64,000 bases of DNA from Octopus sinensis (lineage: Eukaryota): positions 60,760,001 through 60,824,000 of the forward strand of contig NC_043000.1 of NCBI RefSeq assembly GCF_006345805.1, written 5' to 3'. The position numbers were made by a program, and so were the translations under genes. Shown piece after piece: positions 7,889 through 59,580 of the stretch; position 1 is the stretch's first letter; each line of letters begins with the position of its first letter. Under the pieces are notes generated by a model, which was not told the DNA's origin, ran no database searches, and was given only the letters and a program-made list of their open reading frames with translations.

Positions 7889-8759
7889 CTATTAATTGCC
7901 CTATTTCATTAATCATACTTGTATCTTGCTGCATTTTCATGTCATTCAAATATTTGAATTGATTTTCTAAATCCTGAAATTATGTTTTTATAAATCTTCT
8001 AAGATGCTTCTTGCACCATAATGCACAAGCATTATGGCACAGTATTTATGACCTGCTGAATAAGTCCTTATTTTTAATAACTGACCACTATCATACGCTT
8101 ACGCGAAGTCAGAATTTTGACTGAGGGATTTTTCAGTTATTAAAATGGAACCCCAATTAGCCATTTAATTTGCACTTTTCTGCTCTACTGTTCTTATCAT
8201 TTTCACAGTATAGCATCTGTGACTAAGGCATTTAACATTCAATTGGCTAAGTTCACTAAATTCTTGTTACTAAATTGTTGTTGATGTTGTTTAAATCCAG
8301 TTTGCCCTGATTGTGCAAACCTTTGATTAAAGTGGTTATAGAAATGTAAAGCAAGGGTGTGGTGTTCACCTACTTTTTAGCTCATGGTTGGGAGGATTGT
8401 CGTGTCAACTCCCACTCCTCCTCAACCTGAGCTTCAAAAACTTTAGCATAGCTCTAATTCCTAAAACCCATTGCCATCACCAGATCAAAGATTTTCAAAT
8501 CATAAGCACCACTTCTCCTTTCTCAAGTAGCATGCATCCAAGATCACATCAATGTGACCTTCTTATTTTAAGACAGTAATGTGTAATGTGAATGTGACTT
8601 AGTCACTGTTTCTAGGAGATCAGATAGCAATGTAAAAGATCCTGTAATACAGTGAGGTAAAGTTTGTTGATATAAGCTAGTTGTATCAGAGGTTTACATT
8701 ATTTCAAAGAACTGTGAATAACAACAGCATCAAGAAGGAGTAGGAAATAGTTTACTTAC

Positions 8760-8920
8760 TTTAGGATATGGAATACGGTTGATTTTTGGATATTCATCAT
8801 CCATGTAGCCATAATATGGATATTCAAACATTCGAACACCCCTGTCATCGAAAGTAGCATAAGCAAGGCATTTGCCAGTCTTCGAAAACCATATGGCTTT
8901 GTTGCTGTAGAGAATTTCCT
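8760..8920 (-). CDS. DPP4-like: DPP4-family gene, exon 7 of 7 in window (161 bp)
   Basis: tttatCAG acceptor and GTAAGT donor. Phase 1 start gives (E)EILYSNKAIWFSKTGKCLAYATFDDRGVRMFEYPYYGYMDDEYPKINRIPYPK, matching the DPP4 EEVF...WWSPNG..LAY.F.D...YPK...PYPK segment. Confidence 0.95.
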
Positions 8921-9292
8921 CTGATAAATAGAGAGGAAGAAAGTTAGGATTAGAGAAAAAACAGAAAGAGAGACAGAGGGAGCAAGCAATAAATCATTGT
9001 ATTTATTCACATATAATGCAAGAAATCTAATGTAAAACAACAAAACAGAACAAAAAGAAAACAAAAAACTAATAGTCTAATTTGTTGGGTAACATTATAC
9101 TCAGGTGAAAAACACAAGAAATCTTTGAAAACAAAGATACTAAAGACAGTACTCATGAGACACTTAAAGACTGTGTACACTTTATTAAAGTGTGGTTGTA
9201 AAACTATTAGGTTGTTCAGATTTTTGAAAACATTTTTTTTCAAATTCGGTTCAAGATGTTATTTTTGGAGTGTTTAGACTCCAAGAATGTAA

Positions 9293-9668
9293 TCTTTATA
9301 TATAAAACTGTAGTTGTGTGAGTGTCTGTCCCCTTCGATTTAGATTCCTAACTACTCCCACATTTTGCGGTGCAGTTTAACCAAAACCGGGTATCTTATA
9401 GTCGTGATTCATATTGAGCCCTTCTACGATGAGTCTACGATTTAAAAAATAATTTATCATCATTTTCTTCCATTTTCAAGCATATTCTTTTAAAGGGAAG
9501 TAACTCTCTAAAAATGTCTACGATGAGTCAACGATTTAAAAAAAAATTTACCATCATATTTTTTCCATTTTTAATGCATTTTTTTGCTATTTTTTGGCTA
9601 TAACTCTCTAAAATGCTTATATAGTTATTTCCCTTACAAACCCGAGCAACGCCGGGCGATACTGCTAG
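9293..9668 (+). mobile_element. Non-autonomous Helitron
   Basis: Inserted as A|TCTTTATATATAAAA ... CTAG|T. GC hairpin CCCG(A)GC-AAC-GCCGGG at 9641-9656 ends 8 nt before the CTAG; no TSD; carries an internal tandem duplication. Confidence 0.85.
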
Positions 9669-10352
9669 TATAATATAATAATATAACAATACCAGACTAG
9701 ATTCAAACTGGGAACCTTAATTCCTCTTAACTAAGAATAGTGACGACCAAATCCACTTGACCACAAATGCATATACATGTACATCTGCTAACAACAACTA
9801 TCTCAAGCATTTAAACATTTAATAGTGGTGGTAACAGAAGTAGTAATAATAACAGTACTGGTAGTACCTGTTACAAATTTGTAATATCTGATTATAATAG
9901 AGTATAACTATAAACTTGTGTACATACTATGTAAGAAATCAATATTATATGTTTTCTCAAGATATATTGACTGAATATTCTTATTGAGTGCTTTCTTAAC
10001 AAATTTATTTTGGAAATGTAAACAGATATACTTTGTAACCATGTGGCTTTGGGCTTGTTTCCACCATGTAAGAATCTTTTACTATTGTCATAAGGCAACT
10101 GTTTCTTTGAGGATGAATTTAGTAAACAGAAACTGCAAGAATCCCATTGTACACACACACCTTTTATATATGAATGTGTGTGTGTGTATGCAAAAATGTA
10201 CTTGAATACTGATGTCTCTTTATGACATTGTGACTTTGCACTTAGGAAAATATTTGGGACAGAAAGTTTCATACTTGAGAAACAGGTAAGAATTGGTGAC
10301 AAGAAGAACCTCTGACTGTTAAATCCTGCCTCAAATAACTATCCAACTAAAC

Positions 10353-10403
<51 letters not shown>

Positions 10404-11097
10404 GTGGATAAAAAGGATAATTTTCCATGCTTTTTAGAGCAACATGTTTTACTTCAGTGAAATATAAACACGCTTGTCCTTCATTCATCGGCTTAGCTAT
10501 CAATAAATTAATATATTGATTTATATCATTAACAAAAAGTCACACATTTTAGAATAGAACACAGTTGGCTAAACTGACCTGAATGTTTAACTAGAATCAT
10601 TTGCCAATCCTAAATAATTCCAAACTTAAAGAGACAAAACTGAATACTATTTGTATAATATTTTGTCCAGTGTTTTATTAATTCTAACATCTACAACCTT
10701 TAAACCTTTCATAACAATATTTCTGATTAAATAAATGCATTGTATATTTATTTTCATTGTTAGTTAAAATGATTGAGAATTTGGAGGAATTTAATTGAAT
10801 AACTAAGTTTTTCATCATTAAGATGATGTTTGGAACACAAAAGGTTTTTCGATAATGGCCTTGTACCTAATTTAGAAAGGCAGCAAGCTGGTAGAGTTAT
10901 CAGTGCATCAAACAAAATGGTATTTCTCCCAGCTCTTTACCTTCTGAGTTCAAATACTGTTGAGAGTGACTTTGCCTTTCATCCCTCCAGGAGTCAATAA
11001 AATAGAATATCAATCAAGTGCTGGAGTTGATGAGATAATAACTGACCTCTTCCCTTGAAAATTGTGGGTCTTATGTCATAAATTGGCACTCCATTGT

Positions 11098-11410
11098 TTA
11101 CGATGGTAAGGGATCCAGTTGAACTGAATAATGGAACAGCCTGCTCATGAAATTAATGTAGAAGTGGCTGAGCACTCAACAGACATGCATATATTTAACT
11201 TAGTTATCAAGGAGATTCAACATGACACTGAATGTGACAAGGCTAGCCCACGGAAATACAGGTACTACTAATAAACTTTGCTAGCTGAGTGGACTGGAAC
11301 AACGGGAAATAAAGTGCCTTACTTAAGGACACAATGCACCACTGGAAATCAAACTCATGACCTTATGATTGTGAGTCAAATACCCTAACCACTAAACCAT
11401 GCACCTTCAC
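11098..11410 (-). mobile_element. tRNA-derived SINE (about 310-bp family)
   Basis: Head GTGAAGGTGCATGGTTTAGTGGTTAGGG; homologous to 26951-27497(-) and 53210-53510(+). Confidence 0.75.
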
Positions 11411-11639
11411 TGTGTCATAAACACTACAGACATGAAAGTACTGGCAGGTGGGACTGTCTGAGATGTGTACAGATCAATGAAAGCATGCTGCAGGTATTTG
11501 TGTAATGTCTGAGCATTGCTGACTTGTGGAGTTATACCAAACAGCTGTTGTTGCTTATAGAATGAATCCAGTAATTGGTTGAGTTCATCATGAGGATTAT
11601 CCATCCATCTATCTTTAACAAAGCAGGGTAGGTAGTATT

Positions 11640-12100
11640 GCTCTGTCTAGTAGCAAGTTGTGTGGTGGATGAGGCTGAAGGGAGAGAGGAAAGACACCTT
11701 CCTCTTCAGTTAAGCTCATATCAACTTTCTTAAGTTTCATTTGGAAAGGAAAATAAGGTTGGATAGGGAACTACTTGAATTTGTAAAAAGGTGGGTGACT
11801 GTGGCAAAAATGGTTATGGAGAACAACAGTTAGGTGAGGGCTTGTGCCTTTGGTGGTCTGTGGGTTTCTTTGATTAGCTTGAGTTCGAGGTTCTCTTTTA
11901 ACGAGAGGATTGCATCATTAATGTGTTCCCATACATTGTATATTATGTGTACTTTTTGTCTCACTGTCTTTTTTTTTCACTGTCTTTTCCTTTTCTTTCA
12001 CATCTTTAATTGAATGCCCTACCACACACACACACATACTGTTGACTGTCCTTGTGATGTCGCCCCTCGTCTATGTCCCTGTGGCAAATAAAAGAAACCA
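11640..12100 (+). mobile_element. Decayed L1/Tx1-like LINE 3' end
   Basis: Degenerate FLKFHLERKIRLDRELLEFVKRWVTVAKM-like frame, then a T-rich UTR ending ...GGCAAATAAAAGAAAC. Confidence 0.4.
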
Positions 12101-12990
12101 CCACCATCATCATCACTATTATATGAATCATGAACTGTTGTTTTGGATAAATTTAGAAAGAGAAAAGTCAGTTATTTAAAAACAATATATATCTATGTTA
12201 CATTTGATTGACCTGGATTATAAGTTAGTGAAGAAATCAATCCAGCTAACAGCAGTAATGGCAGCAGTTACAAGAACAGTAGAAACAAGAATAAGATGCA
12301 AAGCTTTAAACCATTAGCATCAAAGAATTGTGAAGCATGAGAAATCTCCAGGGGAAATTAATCAAGTACGATGCATTGGGAAAGAGACTATACAGCTGTT
12401 CTTAGAATCAAATACATTAATTGAAGACTTCATTTTTATACAGGTCTGAGACAATTACTACTAGAAATGATTTTGTTTATCTGCCTTTCCTTTTGTAAAG
12501 CATAAATATGATGTAAAGGAAGTTGAATTGGCTTCAACCAAGAATTGGTTGTGTTCACTCAATCTGCTAGAAATAGTAACTAAATATCCATCATATCCTA
12601 CCCTACTGTCTCAGAAAGAAAGATATGTTTATAATGTGGCTTTGGGTGAGCAGAGCTCGAATACCTTTAATTATATGTTTGCTCAACCAATCATGCCTGA
12701 TCTGGCTGCTGCCACTGCCAGCAACTTTGCTTCCAGTCAGCAAGGGATTTACTCATATTTCACGAGGCTTGACCCAATCATATTTTGTATTAATGTCTTC
12801 TTTTGATATTATGTTTTAGTTAAGATCTTAAAATATCAGAGATTAAAATAAGTAGCTAACTATTTTGATGTTCATACATTTCATAAACATTAGCATTAAC
12901 AGAGAGATGTGTAGGATGGTGAGAGGGGGGTGCTATGCTAAGAGAAGTAAAGTTGAGCTAGGAGGAATAAATGAACAGGTAAAAAGAGGA

Positions 12991-13400
<410 letters not shown>

Positions 13401-13644
13401 GACCAGAAGTACAAAATATCAGAAGTTAGAAATTAAGAGGTTTAGCGGTTTTTGAGATGTAGATTAGATAGATAGATAGATAGAATCTGTAGAAATGAGT
13501 TGTGAGGGGAGACTGGTATGTATGAGCAACTGTTGGTCTTCCATAATCAACCTAGCCTGGACTTGTGCCTTGAAGGGGAACTTTCTAGGTTCAATCCCAT
13601 GGTCATTCATGACCGAAGAGGGTCTACAAACTCACAGCATATCT

Positions 13645-14030
13645 TGCTGGGTGTGATGGAAAGTGTCAGCTTTCCACAGCCAGCAGACTAAGGTGACACT
13701 CATTTACTGGTCATGCTTCAAGAACTCTGTGAATTCTTGCAGTTCCAAGCAATGCTAATTTTTGTAGGTGCTCTACCTTTGCATTTATATCAATCTATTT
13801 GAGCCTTGATGGTAGTTGCGTGCTGATGCTTCCAAGTGCACCAATTACTCTAGGTACCACATCCACTCTCCTCATTGATCACAACCTTCGAATTTCCCAC
13901 TTCAAATCATCGTAGTTGTTCAGGTTTTCTTCTTCTTCTTTCTCTTTGATCTTGTTATCACCGGGTCATGCTATGTCAATCATCATGCATGTTCTCTTTT
14001 TCTTCTTTTATTGTCATTATTATTGAGAGA
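13645..14030 (-). mobile_element. R4/Dong-like non-LTR retrotransposon 3' fragment (restriction-like endonuclease)
   Basis: Minus frame RTCMMIDIA*PGDNKIKEKEEENLNNYDDLKWEIRRL*SMRRVDVVPRVIGALGSIS, the REL-endonuclease C-terminal motif. Confidence 0.8.
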
Positions 14031-14514
14031 GCAGTGCATGCCATCAAAGTGACATTGGTGTAAAATATACAAGGCCCAGTATACTGATCATGACTACCCA
14101 TCTGATAAGGGTACACCAGGCACATGCATCACATTCATATATGTGCAATATGATGATTTCATATCAAGATAAACAGCGCATGACCTTGCAGGCGGGGCTC
14201 AATTAGAATTTTCTTCAGGTTGAGTAGCCTATCCCACTCAAAAGGTTCTTGATTAAAGGTTGTTTAAGGATAATGAACGAAACACCCAAGTTTCCAGAGG
14301 TGAATTATCCAAACCCCAAAGAATCCCCCTCAACACATGGCTATAACTGATACTCCCCGACTACTTCTGCTCGTGATCAGAGATGCACATATCATCAGCC
14401 ACACCGCATTTTGGCTGTGGCTTTAGCTGGTTAAATCAACCTCAATATTAGGCTGGTACTGAGTGGTACTTTAATTTTATTAATTCAAAGAGAATGAATG
14501 CCAAAGCTTGTTAG

Positions 14515-14940
14515 GTGCAGGCATAGCTGTGTGGTAGGAAGTTTGCTTCTCAACCACATGGTCTTGGGTTCAGTCCCACTATATGGTACTTTGGGCAAAT
14601 GTTTTCTAACATAGCCCTGGGCCAACCGAAGCCTTGTGAGTGGATCTGTTAAACTGAAATTGAAGAAAGCCCATCATATGTGTGTGTGTGTGTGTATGTG
14701 TGTATGTGTGTGTTACAGCCTCCTTGCCTTGACTTCATGTGATAAATGTAAATGTCATCATCATGTAAGTGGTGTCCTCCATTTCCAATCTTCCATGAAA
14801 ACATGGAGAAATATTTACCTCACTTGGAAAACAGGTGAGGGTTGGAAACAAGAAGGGCATCCGGCTGTAAAAAATCTGTTTCAATAAATTCCATCTGACC
14901 CATGCAAATGTGGAAAAGAGGATCTTAAACGATGATATGA
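14515..14940 (+). mobile_element. tRNA-derived SINE variant with GAT tail
   Basis: Head GGTGCAGGCATAGCTGTGTGGTAGG shared with the 400-bp family; different 3' half containing GAAGGGCATCCGGCTGTAAAA. Confidence 0.75.
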
Positions 14941-15789
14941 CATAAGGCTACAAATTTTGAATCAAGTATTTGACTGGTACTATGTTTTATCAAACCCTAA
15001 AGGATCAAAAGGCAAAGTCAACCTTGATAAGATCCAAACTTGGAATGGAAAGAGATGCAATTAAATAGTGCAATGCATTTTGCCTGCTGTTTTAGTGATT
15101 CTACCATTCCAATACCCCTAAAGTACTATTCTGTTATATACATTTTGCTATATTTCGGTATGAGTTGATGACAACACTGTGAAGAGCATAGTATATTTAA
15201 CCTCATTAACTTTTTAATCAATGTGACACTATATTCTGTATATATAGGATATTTGTAAGATGTGATATCCATATGATCGACATATACTGGGACTTGAGAG
15301 CAATCTAAAGCATTTTCATATCACAATTTCTCAGCTTATAACTTCTGATTTACTAAAAAAAAAAAACACACATAAAACCCAACAACTATAAACAAATCTC
15401 CATAGGTAAATTTAGTTAATCCTTGTTATATACACATAATGAAAAATTGAGTAGGATGGAAGGGCATGAAATATGGTGAGAGTTGGATAAGTAGGCACAC
15501 CCAAATGTTCAATCAACTATATTTGTAACACAGCTCTGTTGGAATAGGATTGACTGGGGTGGGTGAACTTGAGAGGGGAAAGGAGGGCATACAACAATAT
15601 ATAATTAGATATTCCTTGTAAATGCCAATGACCATCATGACATTTCTGTTGCATAGGGTAACATGACACATTGATTTATGTGTGTGTGTTTGTGCGCACA
15701 TGTGTGTGAAAGCAGAAATGAAGGGGCAAACATTATGGTAAAACTTCACAATGTCATTTAATTTAGTTATATAATATTATAACATAACA

Positions 15790-16368
15790 CACTTGGCAAG
15801 CGCAAGTGTGACCATAACCTTGTGGCTTATGCTAGGGGGTGTAACCAGTCAACTTATGCGTGCCTTTCCTTCATTGGACACTAAACTCTGCTTGTGAAGA
15901 CCAGTTGAGGCAAGTGAAATCGAAATCAAACTCGGTGACTGGCATCTGTTGCTAGTGGAGCACTAAGAGTACCATACGAGTGAGATCATTGCCAGAGCAA
16001 CAAGCTGGCCTTTGTGCCGATGGCACATTAAACACACCATTCGAGCGTGATCGTTACCTGCGTTGCCTTACTAGCACTTGCGCTGGTGGCATGTGAAAAA
16101 AACATTCGAGCGAGGTCGTTGCCAGTGCCGCTGGACTGGCACATGTGCAGGTGGCACATAAAAAGCACCATTTGTGCGTGGCCGTTGCCAGTACCACCAA
16201 ATTGGCACATAAAAGCACCCACTACACTCCCAGAGTGGTTGGAGTTAGGAAGGGCATCCAGCTGTAGAAAGTCTGCCAGATCAGATTGGAGTCTGGTTCG
16301 CCAGACCTCAGTCAAATCGTCCAATCCATGCTAGCATGGAAAGTGGACGTTAAATGATGACGATGATG
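15790..16368 (+). mobile_element. RTE-type LINE 3' UTR with internal subrepeats
   Basis: Subrepeats of GGCAC..AAAAGCACC and CATTCGAGCG..GTCGTTGCCAG, conserved GGAAGGGCATCCAGCTGTAGAAA, and a (GAT)n tail. Confidence 0.75.
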
Positions 16369-17589
16369 AATATTATAACATAATGAAGAGATGTATTTAG
16401 TCTCTAACAGCTGTTTCTAGAACATCCCATCTATTGGAACTTCATGCTGAGCAAAGATTCCATGTGCCAAGTAAACAGTCATCAGAGAATGAAAAGATAA
16501 ACAGATGTAACTGTGGAAGAACATTACACAACAGCTAACTAATATTATTTATTGTTCATATTGTCTAAAAGAGGAGCAATTCAATTAAAGTCCAATTAAA
16601 ATATGTATTCATGAGGTAAATCCATGAACAAATGAAGAGAGTTGGTAATGTCCAAATAAAGAATTGTGTAGTTACGATCCATGGTAAGTGGAAAATAGGA
16701 GTTAGCAGTTCCAATGTTGGAAAAATACAATAGCTATATTCCATCCAATGTATTTCTGTACAGTTTCCACTGGCTCAGTTCCACTCACAAGGATTGGCTC
16801 AACCGAAAGCTATGACAGTAGACACAAGCCCAAGGTGTTAGGCATGTGGTAATAAGATAGACATATTGTAAAATATCAAAAAGTTGGGGAAACAATTATA
16901 TCTTATTTATCACAGAAATAATTTGTTGCTATTCCCCCACACCTGATAAGTTTAGATAGAAAAGTGGTATATATTGTTTATTTTAGGCACATCAGCTCAT
17001 ATACGAGTGGGTATCTGTGTGAAACTTAGAATATGTAAAAACTGGTTATTTGTAGTTATTTAAGTCTGTCGGAATGTCAAAATTTCTATTTTATTATGCT
17101 TATCAAATTTTAATGCTTATTCATATTGTTTTGAATTAATCATGTATTATGTTGTAGCTTTGATATTTTGATGATGTGATTTTTAGAACAACATTGCAGG
17201 GTAGGTGTGAGAGGCCACATTTGGGTAAGTTGAATATAAAACAGGTTGAATATTTGGTTCAGACAAGGCCAGTTTAAATGCTAAAGAATGAAACTGATCT
17301 ATTCCTGGCATATTGTAGATCTCAAATGTTTGAAAGAAATATTTGAATATCCGAAATATAAAATTATAATGGAGCAAGTTGATAAAAAAATTGAAGGTTT
17401 GTCACTATATATATATATATATAAATATAAATATTAGGGAATAATCCAAATTTACAAAATAGGATATCGATTTTATATATATATATAAATATTATTCGAG
17501 ACAAAACCATATTTATGCACAAATATCATACATAATTTTTAATAAATATCACACATACATCATACAATCACATGGACATATTCATGTTG

Positions 17590-17601
17590 CAAATAGTCTC
17601 G

Positions 17602-17645
<44 letters not shown>

Positions 17646-17727
17646 CACACACACACACACGTATATATATATATATATATATATTACATACATACATACA
17701 CACACACACACATATATATATATATAC
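17590..17727. repeat. (TA)n/(CA)n compound microsatellite
   Basis: Read directly from the sequence. Confidence 0.95.
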
Positions 17728-19170
17728 ATTTTCTGTGAACATCTAGATTCCTTATTCTCTTTTGTCAAATCTTTCCATCCTACTCTCCACTTTCCCTGCA
17801 CTATCTCTGACACCTTTGTCTCCTTTCTTGACATTTCAGTCAGCATTCATCACTCCACTCTCACCACCTCCATCCACTATAAACACACACAGACTCACGC
17901 TCATACCTCAACTTCTCCTCCTCCCACCCTAAACACACCAAGCTTTCCATCCTCTATTCCCAATTCCTCCATCTAAGCAGGTTCTGTAGTAACGGCCATA
18001 ACCTTGAGACTCGGTCTCAACTCATGGCTTGCCACTTCATCCTATGTGGATATCCCCTCACCACTATCTACACCACCCTTGCCAGAGCATGTTCCGTGGA
18101 CCGTGCATCTGCTCTCTCCTTGAACCTGCCCCGCTGTATCCTGCCTCCCATTTCCCCTTACCTACCACCCCACCACTCTACCTCTCCAACACACCATTCT
18201 CCGAGCCTTCCGGAGACTCCAGTCTGACCCCTCCACTTCGCACATCTTTTCTAACTGACCCCTCCTCTCCTTCAAATGAACCCACAACGTACGAGACCTC
18301 TTGGTTCACAACTTCTTCCCTAACCCAACCTGGCTCGTTCTCCTGCTCCCGCCCATGCTACCACACTTGCCCTTACCTCTCCAACACCACCCTCCTCACC
18401 GGCACCCATCATTGACCCTATCACATCACTGACTCCTTCACCTGCACTTCTACCAATGTCATCTACTGCATCTCCTGCTCTCTTTGCCCTTCTCTATACA
18501 TCGGGCATACGGGACAGCACTTGGCTGACTGGTTCGCGGAACACCTCTGAGATATCCAACTTGGCAATGACACCCCGGTCTTGCGCCATTTCTGCTCTAC
18601 CGGTTACTCTTTGCAGCACCTGACTGTGTTTGGATTGTCCTTGCACAGGGGCCATCTGGACTTCCATTTGTACTGTGAACAGGGATTAATCTCTCTTCTC
18701 TCCTTTGCACCACATGGGCTCGACTCTCCTCCTCTCTTCATCTAACCTCCTCCCCTCACCTCTCTCCCCCTCACACCTACTTCCTCCCACCCACCTCTCC
18801 TCTCTTGCTCCAACTCCTACTTCTTCTCTTCACTCCTACCCACCTTCTCCTTCCCCCATTCATCGTCACCCCTTCCTTGTAACCTCACCTCACCCCTACA
18901 CATTCCAACCCACCTTCACTAGCCTTCCCATCCCACCCCACCCCCTACACCTACTCCCAAATACCCCAACCCCACCCCACCTCTACTCCCACCCTCTGCC
19001 TACCCACACATCCCACCTCTACCCCACCCTCTGCCTACCCACATACCCCGCCTCTACCCCCACCCTCAGCCTAACCCCACCCTCAGCCTAACCCACATGC
19101 CACCCTTGCTTTCCTTACTCTTGCCTCTCCCACCTCCCAACACCATCATACCACTATACCACCATACTAC
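17728..19170 (+). mobile_element. Second Penelope-like element (RT thumb + GIY-YIG + C-rich 3' tract), 5' truncated
   Basis: SFVKSFHPTLHFPCTISDTFVSFLDISV...TSIHYK, then FTCTSTNVIYCISCSLCPSLYIGHTGQHLADWFAEHL*DIQ (VIY...YIG). C-rich low-complexity tail at 18720-19170. Confidence 0.9.
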
Positions 19171-19439
19171 ACAACCCTATTCATGTATATTTTCAGTCAG
19201 AAATATTTCTGCAAAACTGTCGTATGTGCTGCATACTACACTTTTGAAAAATGCTAAACCATTGTACTATGCTTTGATAATTTTCATCTGAAGCAGCTGG
19301 AGATATAATGGAATTGAAGGCTTGTGATACCTGTGGAGTATCTCCTTCTCCCATTATAATTTATTTCTGTAGTCTTAAGGATCTGGAACACAAAGAAGAA
19401 GTTTACAAGCTGAGTGCAATTCAATAGTCGTTTATTTTT

Positions 19440-20034
19440 AGTTCTCGTTCATGTGGCTCACTCCCAGTGACCATCTTTATGGCAGCGCATGGTTCATTAT
19501 AGCTCCATGCCAAATGTAGAGGGGATGCCCAAGGGCTGGTGGAGGAGCGAATAAGGCCGAGTTGAAGCATATGCTCAAACTCAGATAAAGCCTTTTTGAG
19601 CAGATCAGGAGCGAGTCGCCGTGGACTGAAAAGATGGGTGGGCCATATAATGGCGAGTTGAGTGTGTGACTTCGATTGATTTGAAAGTCGGATCTACCAG
19701 CTCTTGGAAAGAAGCCAACAGGGAGTGGAACTGGTCACCAGCAGTGGTGACTGAAAACAGCATTATTAGTAACCTGAGTAGGTGTAAACAAAGATGTAGA
19801 ATTGTCCATGAGTCTCTGTCGCCTGACATCTAGTAATAAGTGACAGTGGTTTAAGAAATCCACGCCCAGAATGGGGTACGGTAGATCTGCTATAACAAAA
19901 ACCCACCTAAAATCCCTTCGAAGGTTTAGATCTAGGTGTAATGAGACCTGACCATAAGTTTTTATCTGGGATAGATTCACCGCGTGCAGGTTGATGGCAG
20001 ATTGTTTCTCGGACATGGTAATGGCTACCAGCGA
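19440..20034 (-). mobile_element. Gypsy LTR retrotransposon pol fragment (protease C-half to RT N-terminus)
   Basis: ISLVA..LHAVNLSQIKTYGQVSLHLDLNLRRDFRWVFVIADLPYPILGVDFL, then after a frameshift KKALSEFEHMLQLGLIRSSTSPWASPLHL. Confidence 0.9.
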
Positions 20035-20661
20035 GATCTTGTACAAAATGGCTCTGGCTTCTTGTGCCTCGCTACAATATGATAGTTTGACCAAAAGAAC
20101 CAGCTATCGCAAGCAAAATTGAATATTGATAAAAAAATTTTTTAAAAAACTTACCTTTTGACTGACAGATTTAAAAAATAATTTTTTGTAACTAAACACT
20201 TTCAAACTTCGGACGTTGGTAGAATGTGTCATATAAAACATCTTTTACTCTAAGCATTTTTGAGAAAAACTTATATTTACAAAGTTATTTCACACTAAAG
20301 TTGTCCTATTTTGGTAATTTCAACCAATCAATGACGTGTATTCAACTGAATAAAATTACTGCCGTTGTTTGTCAACAACAACTATTGGCGATGTGTTTTT
20401 CGTTTGTCACTGTTATTTATGACATCGTTCGTGCGTTTGTACTGGTTTTAGCTTTAAGGTTTTAGGGTTAGCGTGTTAGGGTTAGGGTTTTAGGGTTAGG
20501 GTTTTAGGGTTAGCAAAAAAATATATACACATATGGTTTCTGTCTATCTACACATGTAGAAGAGTATATTGTTATAATAAAACTCGCAAATCTTGTCAAA
20601 TAGAGCTACACAGGGTTTTCTGGTCGAAATAATTTATTTCACCATTTTCCAATCTGAGATC
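20035..20661. mobile_element. GATC-bounded non-autonomous DNA element with internal TTAGGG/TTTTAGGG repeats
   Basis: GATC at 20035-20038 and 20658-20661, with imperfect terminal similarity GATCT..AAAATGG. 20150-20400 is homologous to 41355-41608(-) and to the arms of 50633-51402. Telomere-like run at about 20460-20512. Confidence 0.65.
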
Positions 20662-20828
20662 AAGACCATTTGTCAGTTGTCTTTTGAGAAGATGACGATT
20701 AAACAAGAGATGCGGTATTTAACAAGATTTGTGGTTTTATTGTAACATTACTTTTACACTCTTAGGTGACCGAGTGTTATACTACTTGTTGAAGCCTTAC
20801 CGTATTACACACACACACACACACGAAC

Positions 20829-20864
<36 letters not shown>

Positions 20865-21010
20865 GAACACCGGGGACGTTTAATATGAGAACACCGGAAA
20901 CGTATAACAAAGAACTCCGCGAACATTCAACAAGTGAAAACTGTATAACATTATTCCGAAAACTATCTAAAAATAACGACTAAGTTTGAAGCAATTGTGG
21001 CTAAAGCAAC

Positions 21011-21925
21011 ATGGAAAATCTTGAACAGAACGAACAAGAATACAATTCTACAACTAATGCAAACCCTGCGTTTAACTGGATAAGTATAACTGCTTGTATT
21101 GCAGTCATCATAATATTCGCGCTCAACGCGTTGTTAACGATTGCCATTTTCCTAGATCGTAGAGTCTATGAAAAAACACGCTCTTTCGTACTGTTGACTT
21201 ATATGTTTAACTACACACTGTTTGCCTTGCTTTTTTATTTCCGTTACGTACACATTTTTATATTCAATGATTTGCCACTGTCTAGCTGCTTAGTGATTTT
21301 TATACTAAGTTCCGTGGCTGAGGAGGGTGCTGTTTATTTCATGCTCCCTATTTGTTGCGATTTTATCGTAAAATACTTTAAACCAAGCAAATATGAAAGT
21401 CAAAGTTTTCTGTGCGTGCAGATCATATTAACAGTGGTTTTGTGGGCTTTTATCTGGATCAAAGTATTATCAATGACTCTAGCTGGCTCATATTACGAAG
21501 GTGGCTCATGTAAGATATTCTTAGATACTATTTCCTACCATATCTATTTAGCTATAGTGAACTTATATATTATGTCAATGCTAGTATTTGTATGTCTATT
21601 GATCAGCATTGCCGCGAAGAGTAGAGAAAATGATACAATGAAATCATCATTAATAACTGTGATAGTTATTGGTGTATTCATCATAGTTGTCTACTCTATT
21701 GAAAACATTACGTATTTTCTAATGTATAAAAAAATAGTTGAACAAAAGATTTACATAGCGTTTTTAATATTCATGTCAAGATTTTTAGTGGTGCCGTTTT
21801 TGTGGCTTTCTGATACAAGTCTAAAACGAAGTATTCGGAAATTATGTTGCGGGAAACGTAAAGACTTCACAGTACCTCCATCACATGAAATGACTGATCT
21901 AATGCAATCACATAAAGTGATGTAA
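21011..21925 (+). CDS. Intronless divergent class A (rhodopsin-like) 7TM receptor, orphan or putative chemosensory GPCR, 304 aa
   Basis: Longest ORF in the window, with an in-frame TAA at -9 and Kozak AAC ATG G. Seven hydrophobic segments; N-terminal NST sequon; N1.50 (LNALL); Cys at the top of TM3 and in ECL2; W4.50; P7.50; helix 8 ending in KLCC. ATTAAA at 22003-22008. Confidence 0.9.
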   Translation: MENLEQNEQEYNSTTNANPAFNWISITACIAVIIIFALNALLTIAIFLDRRVYEKTRSFVLLTYMFNYTLFALLFYFRYVHIFIFNDLPLSSCLVIFILSSVAEEGAVYFMLPICCDFIVKYFKPSKYESQSFLCVQIILTVVLWAFIWIKVLSMTLAGSYYEGGSCKIFLDTISYHIYLAIVNLYIMSMLVFVCLLISIAAKSRENDTMKSSLITVIVIGVFIIVVYSIENITYFLMYKKIVEQKIYIAFLIFMSRFLVVPFLWLSDTSLKRSIRKLCCGKRKDFTVPPSHEMTDLMQSHKVM

Positions 21926-22884
21926 AAACTGTACTATATTAATTTCTATAGTACTATAAATTTATCTGTTATATCAGCTTGCCTAGTTCTTTATGTAATA
22001 CTATTAAACATTATATCTTCTACTGTACAAATACTTTCTTACTTCATGGGATGGGGGTCATCACAGGTTAGAGGTCCCAGAGACATCGCAATGCATAGAG
22101 CTGACCAGTTTCACCAGTGCTCACCATTGCATCCTCAAAGGTGACATCAAGCCTCTGGAAATCTTCCCCAATCACATCCAGCTATCTGGTGTGGGGCTTG
22201 CTATGAGGCCTCTTCCAGCCAGCAGCTGCTGCATCGAATGCAAGTAAAGCCCTGATAGGATGATCTAGTAGGAGATTACACACACACACTCACACACATA
22301 TATATATATAAATTTAATGCACAATATATGGATTTATCTAATCTGGTGGTACTCACAAAAAGCTCCTTTAGTGGACCAGGGTACAAACCATGTAGTAAAT
22401 CAAATCATAGGGGTGTAATGCATATATATATATATAGAAAGAGACATGTAGAATCAGGTGTATGTGCAGATAAGAATAGACATCACAGAAAGACAGAATG
22501 AACTAAACAGAATAGGAAGACATGGGATGGAGAATTACTGAAGAGGTCACAAGATGTGTGATGATAGATTTAAGACAAAGAACACTAAAATAAGAACAAT
22601 AATAAGACCAAGTATATAGTAAAAATGTGTGGATGTATGTACATGTGTGTGAGTGTGTATATGCACGAACGCGAAAATATTTGTCTAAGTATTAATCTTC
22701 CTTTCACCTTCTACTTTCTTTTTTCCCTAAGCAGTTATTACAGCGGAAGCTGATTATATCATTTTATCTAAACTGGAATGTATGCTTTCCATGTTCATAT
22801 TTGAATTTTTTGCTTTTATTAATTTTCAAACTCGATGGACATATAACAAGAAGCCTGCTGACACTAAAAATCTCTAGTGAAACT

Positions 22885-22946
22885 TCTTTATCAATGTACC
22901 TGAAGAGACCCAGACTGATGGGTCGAAACATGTTGTACATGATAAA
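22885..22946 (+). ncRNA. Minimal type I hammerhead ribozyme
   Basis: Stem I ATGTAC(22894-99)/GTACAT(22935-40), extended by TTTATC/GATAAA. CTGAAGA core 22900-06; stem II GACCCA/TGGGTC; GAAA 22925-28; palindromic mini stem III ACATGT; GUU cleavage triplet ending at 22934. Confidence 0.85.
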
Positions 22947-23593
22947 AGTCTAATACAAAATCCATCTCTTACTATTAATTAATACTGCCACTGTGAAGTT
23001 CCTGAAGTAAATCCAATGGAAGCGTACCACAACTACAGATAACAACAGATAGCCTGAACTGTGCTGGTGCTCTACTCAGCATTTAAACGCACTAACCTAA
23101 TTATACATATTTGTCTAAATTTTCTATTATATATATATATATTCTATGTGAATTCTGTGCACCACAGTGATTCCATTGATTTGGAAAAACTTGCTAATGA
23201 CTAAGAATTGGATGAATTACAACAACTGAAGAACTCTGTATCATCTTTAAAATTTTATCTGGTTTCTCTGCCTGCTTCCATGGAGTGTATATGGTATGAT
23301 ATTTCTATGGATCTTGAATGACCTTTGGTACCTGCTAAACAGACTCCCAGTCTTTTTCTGCTTTTTACAATTCATTTCACCATATTGACACAATTTAAAA
23401 AAGCTCAACTTGATGCGAATACATTTGACGCACAATGATAAAATTACTTATTCATACACAGACACCTTCAGCACATAAATCTGTTGTTCCTAAAACAAGA
23501 CATTACTATATTACTCTTAAAAGTGGCAGAAAAGTTCATTGGCTGGCCAAGTATGAACATGTATTTTATGTATGATACCACATTTCTGTGCTA

Positions 23594-24856
23594 CCAGGTC
23601 ATCCCATAAGTTCTGTCTGATTTTACCTTTTTTTAAAATTGAATGAAATTTAATAGTATTTTAGAATGTCTAATGGAATTAAAAATCATTTTTATGCATT
23701 TGTGTACATTTAAACTAATTGAATATTATTTTACAGAATAATAGAATTAAAATTTCTTTGATTAAAACCCTTTTTAACATGGAAGTATCTAAAGAGCATT
23801 TGAGGCACATAATCCTTTATGAGTACAAAAAGGGAAACTCTGCAGCCGAAGCGACTCGAAACATACACTCAGTTTATGAGAAGAATGCTTGAACGAAAGA
23901 ACTTGCAGAAGCTGGTTTGCAAAATTCAGAAGTGGAGATTTCAGCCTAGAAGATGAAGATTGAACAGGAGGTCCATTTAAGTTTGATGATAAGCTCCGTG
24001 AGGCACTACTTGAAGAAAATCCTACATTATCATTTGAAGAATTGGCAATAAAGCTTAGTTCAAACCATACAACTGTTTATCGTCATCTTCAACAACTTGG
24101 AAAATGGGGGCCTCATGAATTGTTCAACAGCAACCGCAAATCCCAAGTTGACAACTGCTCTTCTCTCCATTCTCATGAACTCATTTCACCCTTTTTGGAT
24201 AGGCTTGTGACAAAAAGTGGATCTTCTATTGAAATGTTAATCGTCATAAACAGTGGCTTGATAAAAGGGAAAAAGCTCAACCACAACTGAGAAGGGAACT
24301 TCATGGAAAAAAGGTTCTTCTCTCTATCTGGCGGGATAGCAAAGGAGTAATTTACTTTGACTTGTTACCACCTAATGCAACAATCAATGCTCAAGTCTAC
24401 TGTCAGCAGTTAGAGCGTTTGAACCAAACTTTGAAGAAAAAAAGACTCACTTTAGTGAATTGAAAAGGAGTGATATTTCATCAGGACAATGTATGACCCC
24501 ACACTGCAAAGATCACATCACAGAAGATCGAAGAGCTTGGTTGGGAAAAAATTCCTCATCCACCTTATTCTCCTGACCTTGCTCCTTCAGACTACCATTT
24601 GTTTCGTAGTTTACAGAATCATTTGGGGGATATAACTTTCGCAAGCCCAGAGGAGGTCGAAACTGACATTTCAGAGTTCTTTGCTTTGAAACCAAAAGAG
24701 TTTTACATTGATGGGATTAAAAAGCTTGTAAATAGATGGGAGGAAGTCATAGATAATCAGGGAAAGTACACTGATGATTAAATTTCAATTAAATATAACA
24801 TTTGATCACTTGTTTTCTTTATTCAAAATTCAGACAGAACTTATGGGATGACCTGG
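23594..24856 (+). mobile_element. Full-length mariner element (DD34D) with transposase pseudogene 23779-24781
   Basis: Perfect 27-bp TIRs CCAGGTCATCCCATAAGTTCTGTCTGA and TA TSDs. Motifs W(G)PHEL, HQDN and YSPDLAPSDYHLF with 34 residues between the last two Asp. Several stops and deletions; the first catalytic D is deleted. Confidence 0.95.
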
Positions 24857-25681
24857 TATATTGAACTATTTTGAATTCTGTATACCTTGTGAACTCTTTT
24901 CTTTTATAGTTTGTGACAATCTTTTTGTTTGCGTTATAATAAACTGTAAGAAGACTTCAGTAATGGGGCTCTTGCTTACTGTTGAACCATCGCCCTCAGA
25001 TTTTTCCAGGTCAGGACCATGACCTACAGCACTATCATAAAAGGCAATGTACTGCTATAAAAAGTATTAATGTCCAAGCAAATATGGCTCAATCAATCAG
25101 CATTGACTGACTTGTTATGGTTGATGCAGTGAATTTCAAAGGAAGTGTGCATGTTTTCCTGCCAAATAGCTTGATTGAAGTTTGTGGAAAACTTTTGATA
25201 ATGATTATAAAAGCTGGCAAATTCAGCCTCAGATCAGAGAACCATCCAGCAGACCACATGGAGCTATGTCGTCGTCTTCTACTTTTCTTATTGAACATAC
25301 TTGTATTATGTTCGACAAGAGGTATTGACCTTGTGCTGTAATGTCAGATCATACACATATTATTTGCATGCAACAGTTGAATGTTGTTCCATTAAATCAA
25401 ATCTATGTATGCATGTGCATATAAATAAAATGAGTTAATAAAAATATATGACATGACAACACAAATAATATTAATGTGATCATTTCTCATCTTCATTCAC
25501 AGCCTACCTAATATTAGGAACTGTCAGTGGAGAATTAATCACCAAGATCCATGCTAAAAAGATTTCATAGTGTTTTCTGGTAAAATACGTATGTCTCCTG
25601 TCAGCTTAATTCTATGAAGACTTGAGATAAATACAGACCAACTGGACTATGGAAAGCCATAAAAAAACCATTCTAGCTTAC

Positions 25682-25808
25682 CTTCATACAGCCAGTCAGG
25701 AACTCCATTGAATATTTGATTTAATATTCCATCTTTTGTTAGACGTTTTACTGTAGTTGAGTCGTTGATGTTGGATTGATAATATAAGTCATTATCTACT
25801 CCAAATAC
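25682..25808 (-). CDS. DPP4-like: DPP4-family gene, exon 6 of 7 in window (127 bp)
   Basis: ttttCAG / GTAAGC; VFGVDNDLYYQSNINDSTTVKRLTKDGILNQIFNGVPDWLYE plus G (phase 1). Confidence 0.95.
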
Positions 25809-26793
25809 CTGAAAATGTTACCAGATATTACTTAGAAAATATTTTACAATTAGAATTTAAAATTAATTGGATAGACATCAGGATACTAGAACTAATAAAG
25901 TAATGGTGTGAATTGGATTATAAATAAAAATAAACAGGTGCAAGTTACCATTTTGTGTAAATAAACAGAAACTATGAAGGACTTTAAGAGAATGAATGGT
26001 TCAGCTGATGGATTCTCTCCTCAAAGATGACATGAGTGTTCAGCTTTTGCTGAATGACCTGCATAAATAATTTGTTTATAATGATCAAATGTATGTGCTG
26101 TACATTAGTGCAATCCCTCCATCAAATCGATGTTGCCAGAACGGGTGCATGGTGTACCACGTGTCAGGTGTCGAAGTGATCGCAGAGCAACAGAAGATAA
26201 AGTGTTTTGCTCAGGAATACAATGCACTACTGGGTCTAGGAAATGAAACCACGATCTTGTGGTCATGAGTGCAACATCCTAGCCACTAGGCTATGCATCC
26301 TAGGGTATTTTAATTAATTCGTACAGTATCATCAATAAAAGAAGCATATCTTGAAACTTTAAGCAATACAAAACGTTGGTAAAATTTTTTACATTATTAA
26401 TTAGTTTATCAAGTAGAAACCATCTGGTTTCTTTTATTTTGGACAGAATAATTATGTATGATGTTGTAACACACATGGAGAAATAGTATTATTGCATGAT
26501 TCATTTAATGAGTGTCATAAGGGAGGTTGTAAATTTTCATCAGACTGAATCGACAATTCAAGTTTGATTTCTGGTTGTCGCTACTTCATTTGTTCTGCTA
26601 ATGCTTTTGGGAAAAACATTAACACAAGTCCCTGTAACTCCTACTCCATAAAGTTAATAAGGCACTTTTCCATTGTATCCACGGTCTGGTTCAAATTACA
26701 GGTTACAAGTGATAGATAGTATGCAGTACTCCCTCTGGAAATGATGAGAAAGTTTTTAATATTCTTGTGTTAATGATGTGCCTTGATAATTAA

Positions 26794-28179: not shown

Positions 28180-28261
28180 TACACCATGTCCAACCGGAGT
28201 CCAGGCAACAAAAGAGAACCTGGTCATTTCTTTCCTTGGCCCTCTAAATGGGGTGGTAAAC
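28180..28261 (-). CDS. DPP4-like: DPP4-family gene, exon 5 of 7 in window (82 bp)
   Basis: cttaCAG / GTAAGT; phase 2 start, FTTPFRGPRKEMTRFSFVAWTPVGHGV (compare DPP4 WVTWSPVGHKL). Confidence 0.9.
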
Positions 28262-40449: not shown

Positions 40450-40930
40450 CAGTCAAAGAAACACAAAACGCAGACGTAAAAAATAGATATACTTTATTGT
40501 TTTATACCGGTGAGAAATCAGTGGTATATCTGATGTCCTTGGTTCTGGGCGTGCAAGGCTGAAAGTTAATCGATTGTAATATTTACAATGTTCAGCCGCT
40601 AAAAACAGAACGGGTTAAAGATGGCCGCGGAATATGAAGACGATGTTGTCTGCAACAATTTGGTAAAAAACCTTCGGCCGACTGCTATCAAAGCTGGACA
40701 GAGAGAAATATACGTCTGCTGGTATCAAAGGCCTTCTGCTGTCTCTGATGGTCAAGGTTTTTGCGTTCTCTTGCCTCTTTTCTAAGGGTCGCTTTTCCTA
40801 GCCAATCAGCTAATTCCACGATAGCAATATTTCCTCTTGGTGATGAAAACACGCGCGAATCAGAAAAGGGCATTGTGCGCGCGCGCTGTTGTATAGCGTC
40901 ACTACACCTGTTTATCAAGGCACTAAGTTA
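40450..40930. promoter_or_regulatory. CpG-rich promoter/enhancer-like island
   Basis: More than 20 CpGs in about 470 bp against a CpG-poor background. YY1-like AAGATGGCCG (40618-40627), NF-Y-type TAGCCAATCAG (about 40799-40809), (GC)n and CGCGCG tracts; no recognisable repeat. Confidence 0.5.
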
Positions 40931-41074
40931 CAGAACATAAAAGAATACAACACACAGACAACACAAGACTTTTTTTAGACCAGTGTAAATATGAATATTG
41001 GTATATATATAAAAACATAGGCAAATATACATATATGCATGCATGCATGGCATAAATAAAAGTGGTAAAGGTAA

Positions 41075-41335
41075 AGATCCCTTTCGGTCATGCATGACCA
41101 TGAGATTGCACCTCAAAAGTTCCCCTCCAAGGCGCAAATCTGGGCAATGCTGTTTATGGAAGACCAGCAATTGCCTATGCATACCAGCCTCTCCTTCTCC
41201 CTGCCACTGATGTTATCTATGGGAAAGGAAAAGGCTGATACAGCGTAGCACCCATGATGTTGCAACTCATTTCTATAACTGAGTGAACTGGAGCAATGTG
41301 AAATAAAGTGTCTTGCCCAAGAACACAACACACAA
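41075..41335 (-). mobile_element. SINE (family also at about 13490-13625 and 31190-31355)
   Basis: Shared TTATGGAAGACCAGCA...GATGTTGCAACTCATTTCTA..GCTGAGTG block. Confidence 0.65.
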
Positions 41336-41354
41336 ATATACAAATACACAACAA

Positions 41355-41608
41355 AATATACATCGCTGGAAGTTGTTGTTGACAAACAACAGTAGTAATT
41401 TTATTCAGCTGAATACATGTCATTGATTGGATGAAATTACCGAAATACGTCAACTTTAACAAAAAATAACTTCCAAAATACAGAATTTTCTCAACAATGC
41501 CAAGAGTAAAAGATGTTTTATGTGACACATTCTACTAGTATACGAAGTTTGAAAGTGTTTAGTTACAAAAAATTATTTTTTAAATCTGTCGGTCAAAAGT
41601 TAAAGATC
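41355..41608 (-). mobile_element. Partial copy of the GATC-bounded element
   Basis: Reverse complement of 20150-20400; terminates ...GGTCAAAAGTTAAAGATC. Confidence 0.75.
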
Positions 41609-52824: not shown

Positions 52825-52899
52825 CGGCATGATATTATATGTCAGCAAAACATATTTCCTATCTGCAGATACTGAGTACACATTGGTATCATACTGTCG
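52825..52899 (-). CDS. DPP4-like: DPP4-family gene, exon 3 of 7 in window (75 bp)
   Basis: tttccaCAG / GTAAGT; RQYDTNVYSVSADRKYVLLTYNIMP (compare YSISPDGQFILL). Confidence 0.9.
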
Positions 52900-59389: not shown

Positions 59390-59580
59390 GATTGATTGAT
59401 TGATTCTAGTTTCAGCTCACGAGCTGTGGCCATGCTGGGGCACCGCCATTTTAACGTGCTTTGCTTACTGCACCTAGGTTTCCCAAGCGGTCACCCATCT
59501 AAGTACTGACTAGGCTCGACGTTGCTTAACTTCGGTGATCAGACGAGAACCGGTGCTTTCAACGTGATATGGCCGTAATT
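59390..59580 (-). mobile_element. 5S rRNA-derived SINE (SINE3-type)
   Basis: 59463-59580 is an almost full-length 5S rRNA copy (TACGGCCATATCACGTTGAAAGCACCGGTTCTCGTCTGATCACCGAAGTTAAGCAACG...). It has no oligo-T terminator and continues into a ~58-nt SINE-type 3' body and an (AATC)4 tail. Confidence 0.85.

Follow-up and report, generated by a model that had tools for sequence, protein, structure and literature searches.

Lineage-specific expansions of G-protein coupled receptors (GPCRs) of class A, arranged in tandem, are well documented for molluscs, cephalopods included (PMC6408891, PMC11886862). Nested genes are equally familiar: the opposite strand of a long intron is the commonest setting of gene overlap, the inner gene usually derives from a short young duplicate, and the two members of a nested pair are generally without functional relation (PMC5174743). 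Here we describe an octopus locus to which both phenomena are relevant. The stretch analysed (64,000 nucleotides of Octopus sinensis, contig NC_043000.1, positions 60,760,001 to 60,824,000 of the forward strand; hereafter the window, with positions counted from its first letter) holds, at 21011-21925 on the plus strand, an open reading frame (ORF) for a seven-transmembrane (7TM) protein of 304 amino acids (aa), which lies in an intron of a DPP4/FAP-like gene encoded on the minus strand. This ORF is not a chance ORF but probably a functional protein-coding gene, and it is best read as a stray member of a small 7TM family restricted to octopods, whose nesting looks incidental. As in the nested genes of Drosophila and mammals (PMC5174743, PMC8467205), we find a short young duplicate with one coding exon on the opposite strand of an unrelated host intron, and there is no difference in kind from those genes; the octopus gene is, additionally, a CpG-intact island in a CpG-depleted host. 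The nested gene is real but fairly ordinary.

The window is AT-rich (~36% GC), and the 306-codon stop-free run containing the ORF is the longest in its six frames, the runner-up having 166 codons. No other member of the family is present in the window. The parts of the gene are the following:

21011 to 21925, plus strand: coding sequence (CDS), 304 aa and stop codon, of a divergent class A-like 7TM receptor (from the ORF, hydrophobicity, the AlphaFold2 (AF2) model, Foldseek and dN/dS)
20984 to 21010, plus strand: 27-nt 5' leader GTTTGAAGCAATTGTGGCTAAAGCAAC, conserved across family members (from the alignment and the comparison of acceptor regions)
20865 to 20983, plus strand: putative own promoter, CpG-dense and A/T-rich, with TATA-like elements (from the sequence and the CpG positions)
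21926 to 22025, plus strand: 3' untranslated region (UTR) with the poly(A) signal ATTAAA at 22003-22008 (from the alignment and a signal scan)

A preliminary description of this DNA had proposed an intact receptor gene with a single coding exon, and the CDS is indeed open from its ATG to its TAA. The poly(A) signal follows ~80 nt 3' of the stop codon, and the whole unit from leader to signal (20984-22008) lies within the host intron (8921-25681). The TATA-like elements upstream are TATAA, at 20903 and 20944, and TAAAAATA, at 20968; the most similar locus found elsewhere (contig L002, see below) has the TATA-like TTTATAAAAAC at the corresponding position, the region being partly conserved between the two. 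The composition of this segment points to a putative promoter function.

The closest relative of the window gene is a protein of 301 aa (P0001), with 78-79% aa identity, encoded on Logan contigs of 1.8-3.3 kb from three sequencing runs (L002-L004). The segment shared with these contigs is:

20838 to 22309, plus strand: block orthologous to L002-L004, with 82% identity (CDS 88%, flanks 68-75%)

Since the match includes a single-copy block of 240 bp downstream of the gene, the loci are orthologous. An (AC)n microsatellite (20807-20863) is found at the 5' edge of the block common to both.

Selection was estimated with the Nei-Gojobori method from the window CDS and its L002 ortholog, that is, from one relative. 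We obtained a dN of 0.100 and a dS of 0.224, corresponding to a dN/dS (omega) of 0.45 with a bootstrap 95% interval of 0.29-0.71, and the differences at the first, second and third codon positions were 44, 22 and 38 over 301 codons; omega values of 0.45-0.69 agree with an elevated evolutionary rate. The CDS is 88.3% identical to that of L002, compared to 68% for the upstream and 75% for the downstream flank. Moreover, the two coding sequences are separated by a single in-frame indel of 9 nt, while the flanks show 9 indel events in 602 alignment columns; applied to the CDS, the flank rate predicts 13.7 events (~9 of them frameshifting), and the probability of seeing zero frameshifts is ~1e-4. 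These values indicate purifying selection, relaxed as is typical for fast-evolving receptor families, which agrees with what had been proposed from the window alone; against the one relative compared, dN/dS is not near 1 and no frameshift occurs. The same numbers bear on the possibility that the ORF is a transcriptionally silent relic, i.e. a recently immobilised copy which is still open by luck. Such a relic would account for the fairly high dN/dS, for the lack of expression evidence and for a solitary copy that has lost the splice acceptor normal in its family (see below). Nevertheless, we consider it highly improbable, since the ORF is open in two species that are a dS of 0.22 apart, the bootstrap interval of dN/dS stays below 1, no frameshift is seen where ~9 frameshifting indels would be expected, every family-invariant residue is kept, and the CpGs are preserved against their loss in the surrounding DNA.

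This preservation of CpGs, upstream of the gene and in its CDS, had been noticed previously and is clear when observed/expected ratios (o/e) are calculated along the window:

20001 to 22000, no strand: CpG-intact island, o/e ~1.0, in the CpG-depleted host (from CpG o/e)

The whole window has a CpG o/e of 0.28, with a median of 0.22 for windows of 500 bp. The top 500-bp value (1.33) is found at 20751-21250, at the start of the gene, and the value falls to 0.10 at 22001-22500. The CDS itself has a ratio of 1.00 (1.38 in its first third) and the upstream 1 kb one of 0.93-0.97, versus 0.11 for the 500 bp past the stop codon and 0.31 for the intron without the 20.5-22.0 kb segment. In L002 the ratio is 0.92 in the CDS and 0.31 in the remainder, which hints that the ortholog may also lie within a CpG-depleted gene body. 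From sequence alone, both selection on the CDS and hypomethylation are candidate causes of the retention; the CpG-intact upstream kilobase argues for hypomethylation, presumably in the germline. Methylation in O. bimaculoides is found mainly within the gene bodies of constitutively expressed genes, and unmethylated genes are shorter and silent or tissue-variable (PMC9476566). The pattern found here would fit a host that is methylated and a nested gene that is not, the latter with a regulatory domain of its own. Two more CpG-intact patches are present in the window, at 40251-41000 and 9251-9750 (o/e 0.99-1.01); the ORFs at 39941-40432 and 41220-41531 (both on the minus strand) have no Pfam match, and the patches may represent repeats that were inserted recently, or unmethylated elements of another kind.

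The host gene was reconstructed by comparing 150 stop-free minus-strand pieces with Pfam, of which two matched DPPIV_N, and by a tblastn search with human DPP4 (a sequence used as a probe only), which pointed to 25817-25674 and 8921-8739. The Pfam matches come from the pieces at 25650-25817 (E=1.2e-9, profile positions 57-96) and at 8733-8993 (E=1.3e-16, profile positions 96-153), so that the second abuts the first on the profile. The host exons relied on were re-confirmed by Pfam or PDB searches, with exon C kept as tentative. In host order, the elements are:

52825 to 52899, minus strand: probable host exon C, 75 nt, RQYDTNVYSVSADRKYVLLTYNIMP (weak tblastn match to the DPP4 probe, good AG/GT boundaries)
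28180 to 28261, minus strand: host exon D, 82 nt, ending in ...FSFVAWTPVGHGV (AG/GT boundaries, phase fitting exon A)
25682 to 25808, minus strand: host exon A, 127 nt, VFGVDNDLYY...NGVPDWLYE (DPPIV_N E=1.2e-9; acceptor ttttcag, donor gtaagc)
8921 to 25681, minus strand: host intron of 16,761 nt, phase 1, holding the nested gene (canonical AG/GT exon boundaries)
8760 to 8920, minus strand: host exon B, 161 nt, (E)EILYSNKAIWFSKTGKCLAYATFDD...YPK (DPPIV_N E=1.3e-16; acceptor tttatcag, donor gtaagt)

Splicing of exons A and B in frame creates the peptide DWLYEEEILY, whose DWLYEEE we take to be the substrate-anchoring DW(V/L)YEEE motif of DPP4-type enzymes. No YEEE motif is found in a single-frame scan of the window, because the intron splits it. 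The spliced D+A+B peptide matches DPPIV_N with E=5e-36, the match being extended to profile position 45, and its best PDB matches are FAP and DPP4 (~1e-23), with DPP6 and DPP10 behind at ~1e-17. An S9 catalytic elbow (GWSYGG-type) is present in no frame of the 64-kb window, because the window covers the N-terminal propeller part of the host only; as read from that part, both an active enzyme and an inactive DPP6-like protein would fit. Exon C has no Pfam detection, and across the 24.6-kb gap that separates it from the next host exon (52.8 kb to 28.3 kb) the reading phases mismatch, therefore this gap holds at least one exon not found here. The nesting itself, as first proposed from the window, is confirmed: the ORF is on the plus strand, in a 16.8-kb intron bounded by two DPPIV_N exons of a minus-strand DPP4/FAP-like gene.

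In order to understand how the gene came to be there, its family has to be considered. A word-indexed search of 5.8 billion proteins gave 8 relatives, an exhaustive phmmer search of 1.84 billion cluster representatives gave 7 matches, and a profile search gave 11. The named sources are octopods without exception (Octopus bimaculoides, O. sinensis and Argonauta hians), and the other matches come from Logan or ENA assemblies. The relatives sampled in O. bimaculoides and O. sinensis lie in arrays (loci L001, L005, L006, L009 and L010, in O. bimaculoides CM046617.1:221-297 kb and O. sinensis CM016875.1:16.41-16.48 Mb). In O. bimaculoides at least six members occupy one strand of CM046617.1 at ~231-296 kb, and in O. 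sinensis at least five same-strand members are found on CM016875.1 at 16.416-16.478 Mb. A lineage-specific chemoreceptor-like expansion had been suggested for the window gene, and homologs known from octopods only, set in tandem arrays and evolving fast, support the lineage-specific part of that suggestion. A literature look-up of six LOC identifiers of the family found no paper that mentions them. The octopus GPCR survey based on PF00001 (PMC6408891) probably omitted this family, because Pfam does not see it.

The arrays show a gene structure that the window copy has lost. The proteins that NCBI lists as "isoforms" X1-X4 of LOC115220942 and LOC106869328 differ over their full length, being separate complete coding exons in tandem. 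Five aligned array members have a tttcag acceptor, with its polypyrimidine tract, exactly 27 nt 5' of the ATG, and the leader GTTTGAAGCAAT... follows it; in a sixth member the acceptor is slightly farther upstream. Given this conserved acceptor, the array coding exons must be joined to an upstream leader exon, which in turn explains the NCBI isoform models. The arrangement suggests a leader exon shared by alternative, complete coding exons. Shared 5' non-coding exons have been reported for some vertebrate olfactory and vomeronasal receptor gene clusters. The octopus arrays resemble these clusters, as well as the protocadherin and UGT1A loci, in that alternative coding exons are apparently joined to a common upstream exon; unlike in the variable-exon clusters of protocadherins and UGT1A, what is shared would here be a 5' leader and not a set of 3' constant exons, and the window copy is no longer within such an arrangement.

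The window gene belongs to the same family as the members at LOC115220942, LOC115220941, LOC106869328 and LOC128246974 (53-62% aa identity) and shares with them the 27-nt leader and a 3' UTR with ATTAAA. It differs from them in its setting: the array members are same-strand tandem genes in CpG-intact DNA (o/e 0.77-0.99 at full length over 20 kb, in both O. bimaculoides and O. sinensis), spliced to their leader at tttcag, whereas the window gene stands alone within a CpG-depleted DPP4-like gene, in antisense orientation, and is devoid of the acceptor. "Intronless", as it had been called, therefore holds for its coding part, which is one exon, but not as a description of the family, whose array members are joined to a leader exon upstream of them at an acceptor lost here. 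The window gene pairs with P0001 in a maximum-likelihood tree (support 100/100), and the pair is sister to the O. sinensis "isoform X3" of LOC115220942 (P0004; support 100/99), which is located within the O. sinensis array between two other members. In O. bimaculoides, no counterpart of the clade formed by P0004 and the window gene was found by tblastn (E<1e-10) in L001 and L006 between P0005 (~286 kb) and P0002 (~271 kb), the place that corresponds to its site in the O. sinensis array, which suggests that this member was lost or has strongly decayed there.

Where the array members have their acceptor, the window and L002 keep the 27-nt leader but have cgactaa and cgaccaa, respectively, in the preceding bases, and not tttcag. 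The polypyrimidine tract of the array members (pyrimidine fraction 0.67-0.78) has given way to unrelated A-rich sequence (0.44). The array DNA, ~65 kb from O. sinensis (nearly contiguous) and ~63 kb from O. bimaculoides (~128 kb altogether), has no detectable DPP4-like exon, while the window has three Pfam-supported host exons and a probable fourth; therefore the nested position is a derived relocation, and nesting looks incidental, not a property of the family.

How the copy moved is a separate question from whether it functions. One explanation, already raised in the preliminary description, is a processed retrogene, in which a spliced array mRNA would have been reverse-transcribed and inserted in the DPP4-like intron; this concerns the origin only and is compatible with a functional gene. 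It has some evidence on its side, given that the window copy's homology to L009 (the sister locus in O. sinensis) and to other array members starts at the old acceptor and ends ~95 nt past the stop codon, just beyond the shared ATTAAA, that acceptor and polypyrimidine tract are missing in both the window and L002, and that no paralog lies anywhere near this solitary copy. On the other hand, the usual traces of retroposition are lacking: there is no A-run of six or more in 21900-22600, no convincing target-site duplication (the only flanking repeat being a low-complexity ATTA(CA)n at 20804 and 22275), and the 120 nt upstream of the leader match nothing in the ~128 kb of array DNA, the 10 kb ahead of the first "isoform" exon included, so that no trace of a leader exon can be made out. 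Furthermore, the limits of the homology do not discriminate between origins, because at the level of divergence involved (71-75% CDS identity) the neutral flanks of a DNA duplicate would be unalignable too. We thus regard retroposition as a serious possibility but, on balance, somewhat improbable.

Whatever the route, the steps can be ordered only by inference. Long introns are easy targets for short duplicate genes to land in, and the window copy, a member now standing alone, would have departed from the array prior to the divergence of its species from that behind L002-L004, to land antisense in a long intron of the DPP4/FAP-like gene. There it would have lost its acceptor, and most likely it is now transcribed from its own A/T-rich, TATA-like and CpG-rich proximal promoter, with a transcript that would end at the ATTAAA past the stop codon. 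A more ambitious version of this account joins all its parts: an octopod-specific family missed by PF00001-based surveys and lacking R3.50, NPxxY and CWxP, an ancestral array with one leader exon and a possible choice of one receptor per transcript, and a window copy that is an escapee from it, its acceptor swapped for a TATA-like promoter, forming an unmethylated island in a methylated host. We offer this combination tentatively and find it doubtful as a whole; if true, the window copy would capture a receptor gene in the course of gaining regulatory independence.

The relocation also bears on a functional tie between the two genes. Among the substrates of DPP4-type enzymes are peptide hormones that act on GPCRs, and this, together with the physical nesting, would be the ground for supposing that the gene is nested because the peptidase trims the receptor's peptide ligand, or that the pair is co- or anti-regulated as a unit. 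The link, which the preliminary description had itself called speculative, is unsupported and we hold it to be very remote. The O. sinensis sister gene and all sampled paralogs are in arrays without a DPP4-like exon, the nested gene's own CpG-intact domain, unlike the host, argues for independent regulation, and nested pairs are generally functionally unrelated (PMC5174743).

What kind of protein the gene encodes was less straightforward to establish. No Pfam family matches the window protein even at E<=10, and at the same threshold 7tm_1 (PF00001) matches 0 of 15 family members; we therefore relied on structure prediction, Foldseek and a profile search of PDB sequences. The protein has seven hydrophobic segments, and the AF2 model obtained with the 15-sequence family alignment (mean pLDDT 80.1, pTM 0.77) shows seven helices, a hairpin in the second extracellular loop (ECL2) and an amphipathic helix 8. 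When this predicted model is compared with the PDB, 742 matches have E<=0.001, and the best 50 are all class A GPCRs (TM-score 0.58-0.72, E ~4e-6 to 2e-5); among these 50 are beta-1 adrenergic, A2A, opioid, chemokine and C3a receptors. The family profile hidden Markov model gives 9 marginal matches among PDB sequences, again all class A (the H4R with E=0.009, 5-HT1D, S1P2 and 5-HT5A), in alignments that keep the register of transmembrane helices (TM) 1 to 5 and place C93 on the TM3 cysteine of H4R and the family's CDF under DRY. Additionally, two O. bimaculoides relatives bear the automatic UniProt name [quoted passage not shown], which implies a match to the PROSITE family-1 profile. Topology is consistent with an extracellular N-terminus and a cytoplasmic C-terminus, with an N-glycosylation sequon at N12 and a K/R pattern in the loops that fits the positive-inside rule. 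On the predicted model, then, fold and ancestry are class A-like, class A being the rhodopsin-like GPCRs.

In its retained features the family resembles the class A GPCRs and the mollusc orphan or chemosensory expansions among them (PMC11886862, PMC6408891): it has the 7TM fold with the N-terminus outside, the disulfide cysteines (C93 at C3.25 in TM3, invariant, and C167 in ECL2, nearly invariant across the family), W4.50 (W145, also nearly invariant), the TM7 proline P7.50, helix 8 with the C-terminal cysteines that follow it, and the ECL2 hairpin. Like those expansions, it has a single coding exon, lineage-restricted tandem arrays and fast evolution, and it is variable outside and conserved inside. 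It is unlike them in being invisible to PF00001, in its small size (5-6 or more members per annotated genome in the sampled stretches, not dozens) and in its sequence motifs. At the DRY site the window protein has CDF, and the family has D or E followed by F, I, Y, V or L, but never R3.50; TM7 reads VVPFLWL, with the proline of NPxxY but neither its N nor its Y; TM6 has no CWxP, and D2.50 is also missing. The family has instead its own conserved motifs in the first and second intracellular loops (ICL1, DRxxYxKTR; ICL2, CDFIVKYFKPSKYES). With these activation motifs missing, canonical G-protein activation is doubtful. The term "GPCR" given to the gene at the outset is thus only partly sustained: the class A fold and the weak profile similarity stand, and a 7tm_1 match, the DRY arginine, NPxxY and CWxP do not.

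Conservation is distributed unevenly along the protein. Comparison of the paralogs shows much stronger conservation on the cytoplasmic than on the extracellular side (mean column entropies of 1.31 and 1.95, respectively; p=3e-12 by the Mann-Whitney test), the conserved parts being the ICL1 motif, the end of TM3 with ICL2 (PICCDFIVKYFKPSKYES) and helix 8, and the most variable ones ECL2, ECL3 and the outer halves of TM5-7. This is the pattern that would be expected for diversified ligand pockets facing a common intracellular partner. Accepting it, the variable outer halves of TM5-7 together with ECL2 and ECL3 probably form the pocket in which an extracellular ligand is bound, and the protein probably signals through its conserved cytoplasmic face (ICL1, the end of TM3, ICL2 and helix 8).

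A different view of the same residues is that the protein retains a seven-helix fold derived from class A but is no longer a GPCR, and acts by other means (for example in arrestin- or kinase-biased or scaffold signalling, as a decoy or a chaperone, or as a transducer, ligand-gated or otherwise). The absence of R3.50 (the family having CDF, CDI or CEF), of the N and Y of NPxxY, of CWxP and of D2.50, the blank 7tm_1 search and the unusual conservation of ICL1 and ICL2 motifs that do not resemble canonical class A loops would all be explained by it. We nevertheless judge it unlikely, because the fold matches of the model are all class A GPCRs, with active G-protein complexes among them, because the disulfide cysteines, W4.50, P7.50, helix 8 and the C-terminal cysteines are kept, and because a G protein or arrestin partner common to the family would be expected to leave the cytoplasmic face conserved. 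Moreover, several bona fide chemosensory GPCR families likewise lack DRY and NPxxY.

Some observations weigh against reading the ORF as a functional receptor gene that strayed from this family. The promoter is predicted from sequence composition (with an upstream identity to the ortholog of just 68%), and a dN/dS of 0.45 is high for a receptor, denoting relaxed constraint. The 3.3-kb ortholog contig has only CpG-depleted flanks, and nesting of the ortholog in a DPP4-like gene is thereby no more than putative. As for the receptor identity, the family is blank in 7tm_1, lacks the four activation motifs listed above, and reaches only marginal similarity to solved GPCRs (best E=0.009). Weighed together with the constraint, the CpG island and the tree, these points leave our reading probable and no firmer than that.

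Under this reading, the locus is a clean example of a common process, in which a short duplicate receptor gene settled in a long intron, and it gives no sign of a new molecular mechanism or of a DPP4 link. It is unusually legible, since the acceptor has been replaced by promoter-like sequence, the CpG-intact island stands in a CpG-depleted and presumably gene-body-methylated host, and constraint can be measured against an ortholog. The modest interest of the finding is in a motif-poor family confined to octopods, in arrays with a leader exon and in the swap of acceptor for promoter; such a small 7TM family, invisible to the Pfam class A model, provides candidate orphan receptors for cephalopod sensory biology.

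The remainder of the intron agrees with its earlier portrayal as a place of decayed transposons, containing a frame-broken mariner/Mos1 remnant and many dispersed SINE-like repeats (short interspersed nuclear elements), as well as microsatellites and minisatellites; the ORFs of at least 100 aa in the intron and elsewhere in the window gave zero Pfam matches. The remnant is:

23964 to 24460, plus strand: decayed mariner/Mos1-type transposase (Transposase_1 E=8e-27 at 24233-24460; helix-turn-helix at 23964-24287, in a different frame)

One repeat of ~395 bp with a (TTA)n tail occurs once in the window (14008-14402) and, at four of the array loci fetched, 1-4 kb downstream of the members (L001:11824-12217, L005:14060-14454, L009:14214-14605 and L010:12941-13305), with 79-88% identity between species. 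It was considered as a conserved element linked to the family and rejected, being a dispersed SINE-type repeat. A scan for sigma-70 promoters and terminators was discarded as not relevant to a eukaryotic locus.

Upstream of the gene, the segment 18000-20000 has ~50% GC and a GC skew of -0.36 (a strong C skew), compared to 34-37% GC elsewhere in the window; it contains C-rich minisatellites with units of 35-36 bp and 17-24 bp (18780-19094), and its ORFs have no Pfam match. At 19735-20094, on the minus strand, a 119-aa ORF (blank in Pfam at E<=0.01) carries an ILGVDFL-type motif recalling the aspartic proteases of long terminal repeat (LTR) retrotransposons and, by this motif, is reminiscent of a retropepsin. 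An interstitial telomere-like repeat with TTAGGG lies at 20444-20513, ~500 bp before the receptor ATG (TRF unit GGTTTTAGGGTTAG, 5 copies).

Two matches to structured RNAs complete the picture of the window. At 59462-59580, on the minus strand and thus on the strand of the host gene, presumably within another of its introns, there is a full-length 5S rRNA match (102.9 bits for a gathering score of 38, model positions 1-120 of 120), for which a dispersed 5S gene, a pseudogene and the 5S-derived head of a SINE are candidates. At 22894-22940, on the plus strand and ~970 bp past the receptor stop codon, a type I hammerhead ribozyme is matched with 34.2 bits (gathering threshold 34), its core CUGA.GAG...CGAAAC being intact and its helix III minimal. 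Hammerheads of this minimal kind are typically found in Penelope-like retroelements and retrozymes.

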